Assembly: GCA_002269645.1 (NCBI GenBank)
Contig: NIVC01004271.1
Coordinates: 1-52,257 of the forward strand
DNA from: Macrostomum lignano
Lineage: Eukaryota
DNA length: 52,257 nucleotides
Direction of reading: 5' to 3'
The notes under the pieces were generated by a model. The model was not told where the DNA came from, searched no databases, and worked only from the letters and a program-made list of their open reading frames with translations. Shown piece by piece: positions 13,301-28,300 of this stretch; position 1 is the stretch's first letter; the number at the start of each line of letters is the position of its first letter. The position numbers and the translations under genes are program-made.

Positions 13301-16300
13301 AAAAGTGCCGCCGTCTATGGGGGGGCGGATGGAGAAAAAGTGCCGCCGTCTATGGGGGGGGGCGGATGGAGAAAAAGTGCCGCCGTCTATGGGGGGGGCG
13401 GATGGAGGAAAAGTGCCGCCGTCTATGGGGGGGGGGCGGATGGAGGAAAAGTGCCGCCTTCTGTGGGAGGGGGGCGGATGGAGGAAAAGTGCCGCCTTCT
13501 GGGGGGGGGGCGGATGAAGGAGAAGTGGCGCCATCTATGGGGGGGCGGATGAAGGAGAAGTGGCGCCATCTATGGGGGGGGAGGCGGATGAAGGAGAAGT
13601 GGCGCCATCTATGGGGGGGGCGGATGAAGGAGAAGTGGCACCTTCTAGGCGAGGATCGGGGAGCGTTGAACATTTCTTAAACCTTGCCATAATTTAACCC
13701 ACAGATCCAGAGCATAATGTCGGTCACTGGTTGACAGATGATAAAATTTTATAAATTAGCCATTTTTTTCGCTAATGTCTTCACACAGTTTCGCACAAAT
13801 AAAGAAGTCTGGCTCTAGAAAAAAATAGACTGCCAACCTAAATCCAATCCCTAACCTAAACCATAATCCTAAGCCTAAATATAAGCAGTAGCACAGCAAT
13901 GAATTCAAGTCTTACTCTTAATTATAACAACAACAAAGAAATAATGCATCTTTTCTGCTACGCAAAAACTTCAAAACTATACCGTGAAATATAAATAACG
14001 TAGTGTTTCTTTTATAAGGGGGTGCTCGACTGCTGGCATATGAAACGCATAGCATAAACAACAAAAAAGTTGTTGCAAAAGAAATCATACACAAGCGAAA
14101 AAGTGGCGCCGGCCTTTTAAGAGCCTGGGAAAGCCGCATCAAAACCCGGATTGTTTATACTTTGTGGAAGCCTCTTGCACAATATTTCTCTGAAGGCTAT
14201 AGCATAACAACGTGCTTGACCATCCTATAGTCTAAGACAGCAGCAAGCAGAGAGGCCTCATAAATGGTCCAGTTGCTAAGGCGCGCTTTGCTTCCCAACC
14301 CACTTGCCTAAAAGTAATCAGAAACTGCATCCCGCCAAGTGGAAACTGATCCCGACAGGCTCTTATAGTCGAGTCAAAAGCTTTGAAAGAGAATTTCAAG
14401 CGCTGGAGGACCTTCAGCTCTGTGAAATTTATATATTTGCTGCAGATTGCAGATGACACATATACATAGCATTAGCACTGCATAGCAACAAAGAAATTGC
14501 AACAAAAGCTAAAACTGCGTCCCAAAAGAAAGATAGATGGAAGACAGAACCACCTGTAACTGTATCACTGTTATCAAGGACTCTAAATCAGAGCTCCACT
14601 GGATTGGAAACCAACAATATGGTGATAACTAATAAGCAATATCGTTTACATTTAACATGACTCGTTTTGCTTTGACTTGGTTGCACTATTTACAGAGTCG
14701 ATTATTCAGCCAGGGAGTTTTTCCGTGCGGGGGATGGTCGGCTGAAGATAGATAGATAGATAGATAGATAGATAGATAGATAGATAGATAGACAGATAGA
14801 TAGATAGATAGATAGATAGACAGATAGATAGATAGATAGATAGATAGATAGATAGATAGATAGATAGATAGATAGATAGATAGATAGATAGATAGATAGA
14901 TAGATAGATAGATAGATAGATAGATAGATAGACAGATAGATATATAGATAGATAGATAGATAGATAGATAGATAGATAGATAGATAGATAGATAGATAGA
15001 TAGACAGAAGATAGATAGACAGATAGATAGATGTCTCGTTTTGGCACCTCCTGATTCACTAGAATGAAGGCAAGTAAAAGATAGTATTTGGGCCACTTTA
15101 ATGCATGTAGCTACCTAAAATATCCTAATATTTTGTCTGTTATGAGGTTCATGACCCCCTATCCCTATGGAGTCACATCCTGCCAACGCCCTGCAGTTGC
15201 AGTCTACGTGATACTCTCAGGGAGTCCATGTAGTATAAAAGAATCATACGGACGGGAAGAACGGAAACATAAAAACCCACCAGCCGAACTGCATCTGATC
15301 TCTCATTGGCCAGCAGACGATGCGCCGGAACCAATGGGAATGTTTCCACTTTGATGGAAGTCATATGCAGGCAGATTACACACCTGACGCATCGCATATA
15401 TGAATGCAATTAATATTCACCTGGTCGCTGATGAGGCGTAGCCAACGTAACAATCAGCGGCACTCGGCCTCGATCGAAGTCTTCCAACGTCATCGCGTGA
15501 CGAGCAACCAGACCGCCCTACAAATTTGAATAAGATCATGTATCGATTTGACAATAGCAAGACAGCCAGTGCAGGTATTTACGATGCCAGCAGCAAGGCC
15601 AAGTTGTCGAAAAGTGGCGGTGGAGTCGACAGGCGAAAAGTAAGTTAATTCTTTCCTTTAGAACTTTTTCAGACTTTCTGATTTTTTTAAAGCCAGAGGT
15701 TTTTTAGATATTTGTTGGTTAATTGCCATTTTGAATGCTAAAAACGAATTTGAAATGATAGAAGCGCCATTTTGAATCCAAAAGCGCCATTTTGAACCCA
15801 AAAGCGCCATATTGTTCCCAAAAACGCCATATTAAACCCAAAAACGCCATTTTGTATTCAAACGCGCCATTAGAATTCTTCGTTTTGAAAACTCTTATAG
15901 TATAAACGCCATATTTAAGAACTGAGCCAAAAAACATGTTAAACTTATGACTTTCATTTGAACTCGCTTCAAGAGCTTCTTTTGGGAGCAGAAAAAAAGC
16001 TAAACCTGTCAAGCGTATATTTAAAAAAGAAATTTTCCATATCTGTTCATCTCTCTTTTTTCCTGACTTCATATTCCACTTCAACTGTGGTTACCTGGCT
16101 ACACTGGCTTTGTCCATCTATTTAAACGTTCACTTCCTTCCGATCATCGGTCAAGACCGAATTCTCAAAGGAAAAGAACGGCTTCCATGTCACGTCTAAA
16201 CCAGCGGCTGACTGCACAGTTTATTTAGTTTTGTCTTGCCATGCGCGGACCAGACAGCCAGAGAGAGAGAGAGAGGGAGAAACACAATCCGAAACCTTGT

Positions 16301-25300: not shown

Positions 25301-28300
25301 TGACAACTTGATTGCCGACAGTGTAACGCACAATAACTGTTTCTCCTCAGTTAAAAATCACAGAAAGTATTGCTGCAACCAGTTTAACTTGGCTTTACAA
25401 CTTTTAGCCAAGACTTAGGACCATTGTTAACGGAACCCATTTTGTGGAAATCGTTTATTTTCAACGATAACTTTAATTTTCAGCAAAGTAATCTTGGCTT
25501 AGCTTATGAACAAATTTAATGTACATTAAAAGCTTCATTTCGCCTTTAATGTCACAAGCCAGTATTTGCCTTTGCTTGCACCTGTATTTTAGCTTGAGTA
25601 TAGAAAATTGACAAGATTAGTCAGTTCAGAACTCACCATTGAATGCCCGACCAAAACGATTGAAAACTTTGCGCGACTTGAATACAGCGATTCAATGTGG
25701 TCAACCACGTGGCGAACAAATTCTGAGCAAAGGAATTATTGTTATTGTAATCAAATTTGACCCTATTTCTAGCCATCTATTCTGTTCACTTGGTTTTTAA
25801 ATTTATAAAAAATAAATATATAAATGTAAACACAATTATTTATTTGGCTTACACTAACTATACATTGAAATACAGACTTACCACTTTGTCGGTACAAAAA
25901 TGGACCGTGAAGAGCAGAAAATTCCTGAAATGTTAATTGCTTTGCTTTTTAGACTACTGAACTGATCTGGTCAGTAGGATGTACGGGATTTATTTAGCCT
26001 GTAGAAAAATTACTCGATTGCAGTAGTACACTTACACTATTCAAGTCAACAGCAAAGCAATCGAATCTGGTCTTTGTGCCAAGCGTTTTCCTCATCTGGA
26101 TTGCTACAGAAGCCAGCGAGCGAACCTGCTTGTGGCTGCCATCATTGCCAGGTATGAATAGCAATGGCGAGCCTTCAAAGACGCTGCGACTCACTGGCTC
26201 AGAGTGCCTGGCAGTTCGAAATGGGAAATAACAAGTCAGATGCAAATTCAAGAGATTGAAAAACAAAGACCCAGCAATGAATATAATATAGGCAAATATG
26301 AAGAACTTACCCTTCTGTATAAACAAACAAATTATACTCAGGAAACTTTCTTCTTACAGATGCTGGCAGAGTGACAGGCTAAAAGGTAAAAGTTATGTAA
26401 TGTCAATTCTTCAAAAGACAAGCTAAGATATTAAAACATAAGCCATCTTTTAAACAAAACATTTTAAATATTCTACTAGTGAAATTAAAAAATATGATGA
26501 TAAAGTCTAGATATATATAATAAATATATTTAAAAACCTTAGATAAATCAATACAAACATGCTATTACAAAAGCCTGTAATAATTGGGATACTGATACTT
26601 AACCTTTAAGGTGTTTTTTGTTTCTTAAGCCTTAAGCCTTACTAAAAAGATGTTAGTTTTGCAATTGGCCAATTGCTATATGTGATATAGTGCATCATAC
26701 AGCTTTAAAGCCTATAACAAAGACTTAGATAAAAAGATAGATAGATAGACACAGACAGACCATTTTCAGTATATAGGATAGGTCCTAGCACAGCTAAGTA
26801 ATGCAAGTGCCACTGAGAGTAAAAACGAAGCAAATATGCTTAAATAAGAAATAATTATATATAATGGCTAAAATACTTGGGTATCTTAGCCAATTGCCAT
26901 GCATGCAAATTTGCATATACTACTATAGGTGCCATTGTGTCATATAGACATTTTAGGACTTGTCTAGCCTAATAAGTCTATTGATAATGTAGCACCTATA
27001 AGAGGGGCAATAAATAAGTCAGGTGGTCACCTCCTTTCCTTAGAAATTTTAAAAAATTAGAGCAACATTATATAAAACCTTATAATAATGCATATATTAA
27101 AAAAACTATAGTGGTCACCCCATAGAAGGATAAAGGATAGTCACCTGGGGGGTGGATGGGAAAAGGTTACCTAAGGGATACAGCACTCTGCCTCCTGCCA
27201 ATACTGCCATTTAATATCTTAATGATATAATAATAATATCTATTAATTATAAATATATAAGATATTAAAATTTCTTTTCTTTTGTCTATTAATTGTCTAT
27301 ATGAGTCAATGCATTTTGTACTTCATGTTGTATCTTCAGGTTTATTTTATTGGAATATAAAAACAAGATTAATAATTTACTATACAAAATAATTATTATT
27401 CATCAATTTTTGCAAAATAGAGCAGTATATAGTGCATTGAGTCACATAGACAATTCATAGATTTTTGGGTTATAGATTAGGTTATAGATTTTTTGGATTT
27501 TTGGGCATAATGCCTCTTTGCATAGCATAGGTCCTAATGTAGTAGGCCTATAATATAGCATAGGCCCTTATGCAAAAATTGATAAATATTAATCATTTTC
27601 TTACTTGGGTGCAACCTAGGGATTCACCCAGCCATTTCTATTGGCAACACACACATGTAAGTTGCTATTGGATGGAATAGTCACATGATTGCTCTCAGCC
27701 AATAGCAACTTATAATGTGTGTGTTGCCAATAGAAACAGCGCATGACCAAGACCGCCATATACCAAGACCGCCACAGCTCTTACTGACTATTGGAATTGA
27801 GGGGAAGCTACCAATCTTCCAGCATTGCTATTGGTTATGATGAGTTGTGGAATTAGATGAGGAGGAAGTGTCCCAAGATTGGTCACTAATAAGATGAATA
27901 AGTGGCCCAAAATGATTGCAAGTCAACCAGGGCAATTTTAACAATTCAAATTAAATGAAAAAAACAAGGAGCCTGGCTTACCACCTACCTGGCCAGGCTG
28001 GCCTGCTCACCAGTTCCTCTCTCGTGGCCTTGTCTTGCTGGCTCTCCCCATCTCACCCCTCCTCAGCACCATCCAATAACATGGCAAGCTAAATTCCTCC
28101 CTCCTAGCTCCCCCAAGTGTGGCAGTCTTGGTGTATGGCGGTCTTGGTCCTACACCATAGAAACGGCTGAATGATTCCTAAGGTTGCGCATGTATGATCA
28201 TTTTGTATAGTAAATTTGTCCAAAGATCAATGGGGAGGACAGAGACAAAAAGTTTCGTAGAGCAATGCAATCTATAGTTAGCATTCTTTTTCAAAATTAA

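Follow-up and report, generated by a model that had tools for sequence, protein, structure and literature searches.

The 52,257-bp contig NIVC01004271.1 of the free-living flatworm Macrostomum lignano (assembly GCA_002269645.1), analysed here over its whole length and referred to below as the window, harbours four units contained one within the other: a 165-bp insert (+ strand) inside a Ty3/Gypsy long terminal repeat (LTR) retrotransposon (- strand), inside an intron of a Dmrt gene (+ strand), inside intron 5 of PGAP1 (- strand). An earlier reading of this DNA from its letters alone (the sequence-only reading) had proposed this four-level containment, with orientation alternating at each level, and both proposals were borne out with exact coordinates when the boundaries of all levels were read directly off the sequence. 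It had also held that each boundary is marked by a target site duplication (TSD) or a splice signal. This applies to the transposon levels, whereas the Dmrt-in-PGAP1 level is a gene nested within a gene and not an insertion with duplication, and thus the support for its boundary comes only from the splice sites of the host. The nest, though real, is the sort of structure to which transposon activity and the nesting of genes ordinarily give rise. Orientation would alternate across three steps with a probability of 1 in 8, and guests within introns usually lie antisense.

A second contig, NIVC01002437.1 (174 kb), provides an independent view of the locus. We found it through the sister protein BOX15_Mlig015622g1, which clusters at 90% identity with the Gypsy protein annotated in the window. 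The sister contig aligns collinearly to the window (99.1-99.8% identity), and carries PGAP1, an identical exon for the DM domain of the Dmrt gene, and the Gypsy element at the same site. The sequence-only reading had suggested looking for empty sites, and for the innermost level this contig supplies one in silico: the 11-mer GTAGTGCCCGA occurs there only once, and the 165-bp insert is absent. The sister contig also bears on an objection which that reading had itself foreseen, namely misassembly, which would here mean a chimeric joining of repeats. The window is short (52 kb) and satellite-rich, and the assembly is known to hold many redundant scaffolds, with a source line that carries a chromosome duplication (PMC8629364). 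Against this, the PGAP1/Dmrt/Gypsy arrangement (levels 2-4, counted outwards from the insert) is repeated base for base across all junctions on the 174-kb contig, and the duplications are intact at both transposon levels. The independent assembly of these three levels argues against misassembly, which we consider barely credible as an explanation.

PGAP1 intron 5 and the Dmrt gene inside it

Six coding exons of PGAP1 (PGAP1/Bst1, the GPI inositol-deacylase gene), all on the minus strand, were located from stop-to-stop frames, splice sites and phase consistency. Exon 1 (28965-28828) runs from the ATG to ..YPEYI, followed by a GTAAGT donor, and the public annotation begins the gene at the same ATG (28965). 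Exons 2 (26378-26311), 3 (26207-26036) and 4 (25924-25882) are coding and phase-consistent, with splice phases for exons 1-4 that agree as 0, 2, 0 and 1. Exon 5 (25722-25637) ends in ..VLVGHSM ahead of a GTGAGT donor, while exon 6 (15517-15421) begins with GGLVARHAM.. and has the donor GTGAAT at 15420. When spliced, exons 1-6 give a single continuous match to the Pfam PGAP1 family (PF07819, an alpha/beta hydrolase domain; E 2.9e-39, profile positions 3-132). One of the exons, used by itself as query in a word-indexed protein search, returned no match. The annotated length of PGAP1 is 377 aa for the window copy as against 942 aa on the sister contig.

Intron 5 (15518-25636, - strand) is a phase 0, GT..AG intron of 10,119 bp. 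Its donor is GTGAGT (25636-25631) and its acceptor ...tttgtAG, with the AG at 15519-15518; the flanking codons are ...GTC GGG CAT TCA ATG at the end of exon 5 (25637) and GGC GGT CTG GTT at the start of exon 6 (15517). The intron therefore interrupts the catalytic nucleophile-elbow GxSxG motif as GHSM|GG, and the junction GHSM|GGLVAR aligns without gaps to the GHSMGG of the solved GPI inositol-deacylase (PDB 8K9R). The name 'PGAP1 intron 5' in the sequence-only reading is correct when counting from the ATG exon, and the outermost interval of the nest is exactly this intron.

Within the intron, on the plus strand, lies an exon encoding a DM domain (17046-17209; Pfam DM, PF00751, E 6.8e-23), with acceptor AAG at 17045 and donor GTAAGT at 17210 (phase 2). 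It keeps all eight zinc ligands of the CCHC/HCCC pattern and the KGHKK motif. The proteins closest to this domain bear the name Dmrt2 in their sources, with identity up to 90% (two matches so named). The relatives returned by the protein search are short single-exon matches, all <100 aa, and their frames mostly close at, or a few codons from, the same ..AAQVALRR boundary. The intron that follows and that houses the Gypsy element (17210-24907) has three candidate 3' ends, given by in-phase exon starts at 24908, 24944 or 24986. With the first of these, the last coding exon would span 24908-25292, in an open frame that covers 24897-25289, with the stop at 25290-25292.

Comparison with the genomic loci around DM exons of other animals revealed two motifs shared by this last exon. 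The first (~25008-25043) matches INERMRKRRCFADKDLD in the bivalve Tegillarca granosa, 2.7 kb downstream of the DM exon (tblastn E 3.8e-5), and VLPPVLCDRMRKRRAFADRDLE in the dragonfly Ladona fulva, also downstream of the DM exon (tblastn E 0.002). The second is C-terminal and matches ..ISFSVESIIGVK in L. fulva and ..LAFSIESIIGIK in the Logan contig SRR18067364_11310. In each compared locus the motifs lie on the strand of the DM exon, and the C-terminal one is followed by a stop within few codons, the stop coming 3 residues past the motif in M. lignano, dragonfly and Logan contig. The consensus patterns, (D/E)R(M/I)R(K/R)RR(A/C)FAD for motif 1 and FS(V/I)ESI(I/L)xxx-stop for the C-terminal motif, are both specific, with zero further matches across 419 kb of six-frame translation. 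Human DMRT2 presumably carries both motifs as well. Two papers on Dmrt genes contain no description of these subfamily motifs. Since the motifs are common to the DM loci of other animals, we assign the nested gene, as predicted from the sequence, to the Dmrt2/Dmrt11E type, a short gene with the Gypsy element lying between its DM exon and its last exon.

The gene's 5' end is more tentative. A candidate exon 1 (15538-15639, + strand), reading MYRFDNSK...VDRRK from its ATG to AAG with donor GTAAGT (phase 0), is one of only two phase-0 candidates combining an ATG and a donor upstream of the DM exon, and its phase fits the phase-0 acceptor at 17045/17046. Alternatively, the start codon may be donated by the spliced leader, the sequence of which ends in ATG in M. 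lignano (PMC8629364), although the AAG acceptor of the DM exon does not agree with the YTNCAG motif reported for the species. The sequence-only reading placed the Gypsy element in 'Dmrt intron 2'. Its location in a plus-strand Dmrt intron stands, but the number depends on candidate exon 1 and would become intron 1 if the DM exon comes first. With this exon included, the proposed gene has a length of ~216 codons and a coding span (15538-25292) wholly within one PGAP1 intron, with host exons 5 and 6 on either side. A candidate poly(A) signal, ATTAAA, follows at 25525-25530 (+ strand), 233 nt past the stop codon; coding span and putative signal together occupy nearly all of intron 5.

Several observations weigh against this gene model. 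At its 5' side, no ATG lies in frame within the DM exon, and the acceptor of that exon reads AAG, unlike the CAG/YTNCAG consensus reported for the species (PMC8629364). At the far end of the Gypsy-bearing intron, the acceptor with the best pyrimidine tract, at 24898, does not keep the phase set by the DM-exon donor. The last exon alone has no real homologue detectable with HMMER among 1.84 billion representative proteins, the one match being a junk repeat protein, and the support for it consequently consists of the two short motifs. Lastly, the transcriptome-based public annotation has no Dmrt gene on either NIVC01004271.1 or NIVC01002437.1. The lack of annotation in both copies, the missing ATG, the weak or ambiguous acceptors and the want of a homologue for the whole last exon would all suit a non-functional relic or unexpressed pseudogene, in which case the nest would have three live levels, with the Gypsy element sitting in a plain PGAP1 intron between decaying exons. 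Such decay is difficult to reconcile with the intact zinc ligands and KGHKK motif, the open frames of both exons, the consensus GTAAGT donor of the DM exon, and motifs whose order, strand and frame are all correct, with a stop 3 residues past the second. In addition, none of the 23 differences between the two contigs in the left flank (15518-19070, 3.6 kb; 14 substitutions and 9 indels) falls in the candidate Dmrt exons, although with ~1.7 expected this is not significant. On balance we find a relic unlikely and favour a Dmrt gene that would be expressed.

A further possibility is that the DM exon is a stand-alone, DM-only gene, with the motif exon belonging to another transcript and the Gypsy element lying between two units. 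The unspliced frame of the DM exon does stop exactly at the donor (AGA CGG TAA; ..ALRR then TAA). However, no AATAAA or ATTAAA occurs from 17190 to 19075, that is between the DM exon and the Gypsy element. Motif 1 lies upstream of any ATG in its frame, and its exon thus requires an upstream coding exon. Bivalve and dragonfly, moreover, have the same motifs after the DM exon on the same strand. We regard two separate units as very improbable compared to a single spliced gene.

Two side observations concern the proposed Dmrt gene. First, a single pyrimidine tract is followed by two acceptor AGs with a spacing of 10 nt (24896-24908); splicing to the first would give a frame-shifted, DM-only product of 137 aa, and splicing to the second the complete protein of 216 aa, conserved motifs included. 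Both may be in use through alternative splicing. Second, a hypothetical protein of 79 aa without Pfam match is annotated on both contigs at 17336-17575 (- strand), inside the Dmrt intron and close behind the DM exon. This open reading frame (ORF) may be spurious, called on a transcript from the Dmrt region that was unspliced or unstranded.

Opposite-strand genes nested in introns are common in metazoan genomes, for example in Drosophila. The present case resembles them in that a complete coding unit, Dmrt, lies antisense in one intron of its host. It departs from the typical case in that the guest fills nearly the whole host intron and that the proposed Dmrt ATG is 21 bp from the host 3' splice site. 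Because of this closeness, the Dmrt promoter or 5' untranslated region may overlap PGAP1 exon 6. Dmrt2, terra and Dmrt11E form a subfamily of the DM-domain transcription factors (PMC6604209). The M. lignano gene agrees with Dmrt2/Dmrt11E in DM-domain similarity, in the intron right after ..AAQVALRR and in both downstream motifs, but differs in being far shorter (~216 aa), in having a poly-Q run, in holding both motifs in one exon, and in a DM exon without ATG. In Schistosoma mansoni, T. granosa and L. fulva, no PGAP1 is annotated in the 10 kb to either side of the DM genes, and hence the Dmrt-in-PGAP1 arrangement is probably specific to the M. lignano lineage. Our literature search found nothing relevant on Dmrt together with PGAP1, or on Dmrt in Macrostomum.

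The Gypsy element and the insert in its reverse transcriptase

The Ty3/Gypsy element (19076-24168, - strand) measures 5,093 bp including the insert, and encodes gag, protease (PR), reverse transcriptase (RT), RNaseH and integrase (IN) in one frame, from the gag ATG at 23950 to the pol stop at 19796-19794. Along the two halves of its ORF, the Pfam domains occur in the order zf-CCHC, Asp_protease_2, RVT_1, RT_RNaseH, Integrase_H2C2 and rve. The 5' LTR (23969-24168, 200 bp) and the 3' LTR (19076-19274, 199 bp) both have TG..CA ends, and a 1-bp indel is the sole difference between them. The element is flanked by a 5-bp TSD, ATGTT, upstream at 24169-24173 and downstream at 19071-19075 (both - strand). 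A polypurine tract, GGGGAAGGA, stands directly before the 3' LTR (19283-19275), and a sequence resembling a primer-binding site with a TGG.. start, TGGCATCGC.., begins 1 nt past the 5' LTR. The sister copy has identical LTRs and a gag-pol that is one intact ORF of 1332 aa.

These features are those of single-ORF Ty3/Gypsy elements (Metaviridae; annotated as 'K02A2.6-like' or 'Gypsy retrotransposon integrase-like'), with which the element shares the PR-RT-RNaseH-IN order, the CCHC gag knuckle, TG..CA LTRs, the 5-bp duplication and one gag-pol frame. It is unlike them in that its LTRs are very short (200 bp) and its gag begins 19 nt past the LTR, and it is only 57% identical to the nearest other M. 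lignano family; its clade may be Mag-like. Horizontal transfer was considered for the element in view of its GC content (58-60% compared with ~40% in the flanks), and was rejected because the GC content of two further Gypsy families of M. lignano is just as high. A 25-bp tandem repeat of ~6.8 copies (19469-19638) lies in the 3' untranslated region of the element, past the pol stop and ahead of the polypurine tract.

The 165-bp insert (22218-22382, + strand) breaks the RT coding region. On either side is an exact copy of the 11-bp TSD TCGGGCACTAC (left, 22207-22217; right, 22383-22393; both + strand), and the chance of an exact 11-bp repeat at a given spacing is ~2e-7. The RT frame of the window stops at ..FVVPDNNNN*, and is restored when the 90-nt flanks are joined with one copy of the repeat. 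At the 3' end of the insert (+ strand), a hairpin with a 10-bp stem (22342-22364) precedes an (ATT)4A tail (22370-22382). The predicted fold of the insert RNA has -70.8 kcal/mol, with z -3.6 against shuffled sequences. Such a combination of a hairpin, a simple-repeat tail and a structured RNA is typical of the 3' ends by which reverse transcriptase recognises long and short interspersed nuclear elements (LINEs and SINEs). Neither terminal inverted repeats nor LTRs occur in the insert.

As judged from these sequence features, the insert is best read structurally as a putative non-LTR retroposon, which may be a SINE or the tail of a LINE truncated at its 5' end. It is like 5'-truncated LINEs and SINEs with simple-repeat tails in its 11-bp duplication, 3' microsatellite tail, 3' stem-loop and lack of terminal repeats, and the duplications of such LINE copies and SINEs are of variable length. 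It is unlike them in that no family members, parent LINE or RNA polymerase III (pol III) promoter were found in the DNA searched. The label 'retroposon' in the sequence-only reading is accordingly upheld as to structure (11-bp TSD, empty site and simple-repeat tail) but not as to a dispersed family, a parent LINE or a pol III head. We postulate target-primed reverse transcription as the mechanism of insertion, as suggested by the 11-bp duplication, the structured 3' hairpin and the (ATT)n tail.

The alternative is that the insert is not a retroposon but filler DNA from repair, a fragment left by template switching, or an artefact of long-read assembly. Its singularity is a point against a retroposon, since no second copy was found in ~120 kb of M. 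lignano DNA (window, sister locus and two further loci). The insert also has no poly(A), no Rfam match at E<=1, and no tRNA-like head or pol III boxes in an ARAGORN scan, and an exact-pattern search for its 3' hairpin in metagenome contigs gave no match. Furthermore, seven bases of the TSD, TCGGGCA, recur at 22223-22229, 6 nt inside the 5' end of the insert, which could be due to chance (~1%) or be a trace of microhomology-guided 5' joining. None of the three origins accounts well for an exact 11-bp duplication with a precise empty site in the sister copy, for a simple-repeat tail behind a stable hairpin in a strongly structured RNA, or for the absence of terminal inverted repeats. We therefore consider filler, template-switch or artefactual DNA improbable, and retain the retroposon as the preferred reading.

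The insert also accounts for an anomaly in the public gene model of the window Gypsy, BOX15_Mlig015622g2 (1084 aa, partial, 20523-23950, - strand), whose coding sequence skips exactly 176 bp (165 + 11) at this position. A real intron was rejected for this gap, as no offset yields GT..AG. The absence of GT..AG at any offset implies that the model derives from a transcript of an uninterrupted copy that was aligned to both loci, and it is thus an alignment artefact.

Order of events and possible recent transposition

Nested insertions of transposons into LTR retrotransposons are known from maize, Drosophila heterochromatin and many animal genomes. The present nest resembles these cases in that an older LTR element, bearing its own TSD, has its coding region broken by a younger element, likewise with its own TSD, and in that the order of events is legible from the nesting together with the empty site. 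It differs in having only two transposon layers, an outer element that is very young (LTRs one indel apart), and genes as the outermost layers.

The Gypsy site shared by both copies and the insert found only in the window give the order Dmrt in PGAP1, Gypsy, copy separation and retroposon, and we hold it to be highly likely that these were successive, independent events. In the first step, a compact Dmrt2/Dmrt11E-type gene of ~216 codons would have come to lie antisense inside PGAP1 intron 5. A single-ORF Ty3/Gypsy element would then have integrated into the Dmrt intron past the DM exon with a 5-bp duplication, in an orientation antisense to Dmrt and sense to PGAP1. Thereafter the region would have become two copies of 99.1-99.8% identity, which may represent haplotigs or else the chromosome that is duplicated in the DV1 line. 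Finally, in the window copy only, the 165-bp non-LTR retroposon would have entered the RT coding sequence, truncating it at the ..FVVPDNNNN* stop and inactivating this Gypsy copy.

The two copies differ less within the Gypsy element (19076-24168; 4 substitutions in ~4.9 kb) than in the adjacent intron DNA on its left. Selection, gene conversion or differences in consensus errors could each explain the lower divergence.

While the (ATT)n-tailed insert is private to the window, the sister contig has a private insertion of its own, an intact 1.3-kb Tc1/mariner. This Tc1/mariner-like DNA transposon of 1,302 bp lies in PGAP1 intron 1 (5727-7028 of the sister locus) with a TA duplication; its inverted ends of ~32 bp (CCGGGTGTCCGGATTGAACGG..) are perfect and its transposase frame of 380 aa is intact. 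The window has the corresponding empty TA site at 26965/26966. In the case of the Gypsy element, mobility is suggested by the identical LTRs of the sister copy, its 1332-aa ORF and a matching transcript behind the annotation. A more speculative proposal, which we view as doubtful but worth stating, is that three transposon classes (an autonomous Ty3/Gypsy, the (ATT)n retroposon and Tc1/mariner) have moved in the laboratory lineage since the copies separated. If this were true, the elements would be currently active.

Practical by-products and neighbouring repeats

The nest as such is a textbook example and not a discovery, given that transposons within transposons and antisense intronic genes are both common. 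Its by-products are nonetheless of practical value for M. lignano as a model of regeneration and reproduction. They comprise a Dmrt2/Dmrt11E-type gene, as predicted here, that is absent from the public annotation of both contigs; a corrected Gypsy gene model, in which the non-canonical 176-bp 'intron' is a retroposon insertion; and one private insertion on each contig, which can serve as a marker for telling haplotype from duplicated-chromosome copies and as evidence of recent transposon activity.

Outside the nest, the left end of the contig is taken up by an array of the 14-bp unit TCAGCTCCGCTCCC (1502-9095; 7.6 kb, ~535 copies), with 71% GC and strong GC and AT skew, which probably marks an assembly break. 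Unrelated minisatellite arrays, with units of 4-56 bp, are unusually frequent on the contig, and several of them fall inside PGAP1 introns. They lie at 9918-10706, 12118-13646, 14746-15032, 31957-33071, 36327-39619 and 40004-41901, and further at 42599-43106, 43589-44236, 46519-47041, 47619-48667 and 50406-51076. Those at 9918-10706 and 12118-13646 are also present on the sister contig in diverged form (80-92% identity).

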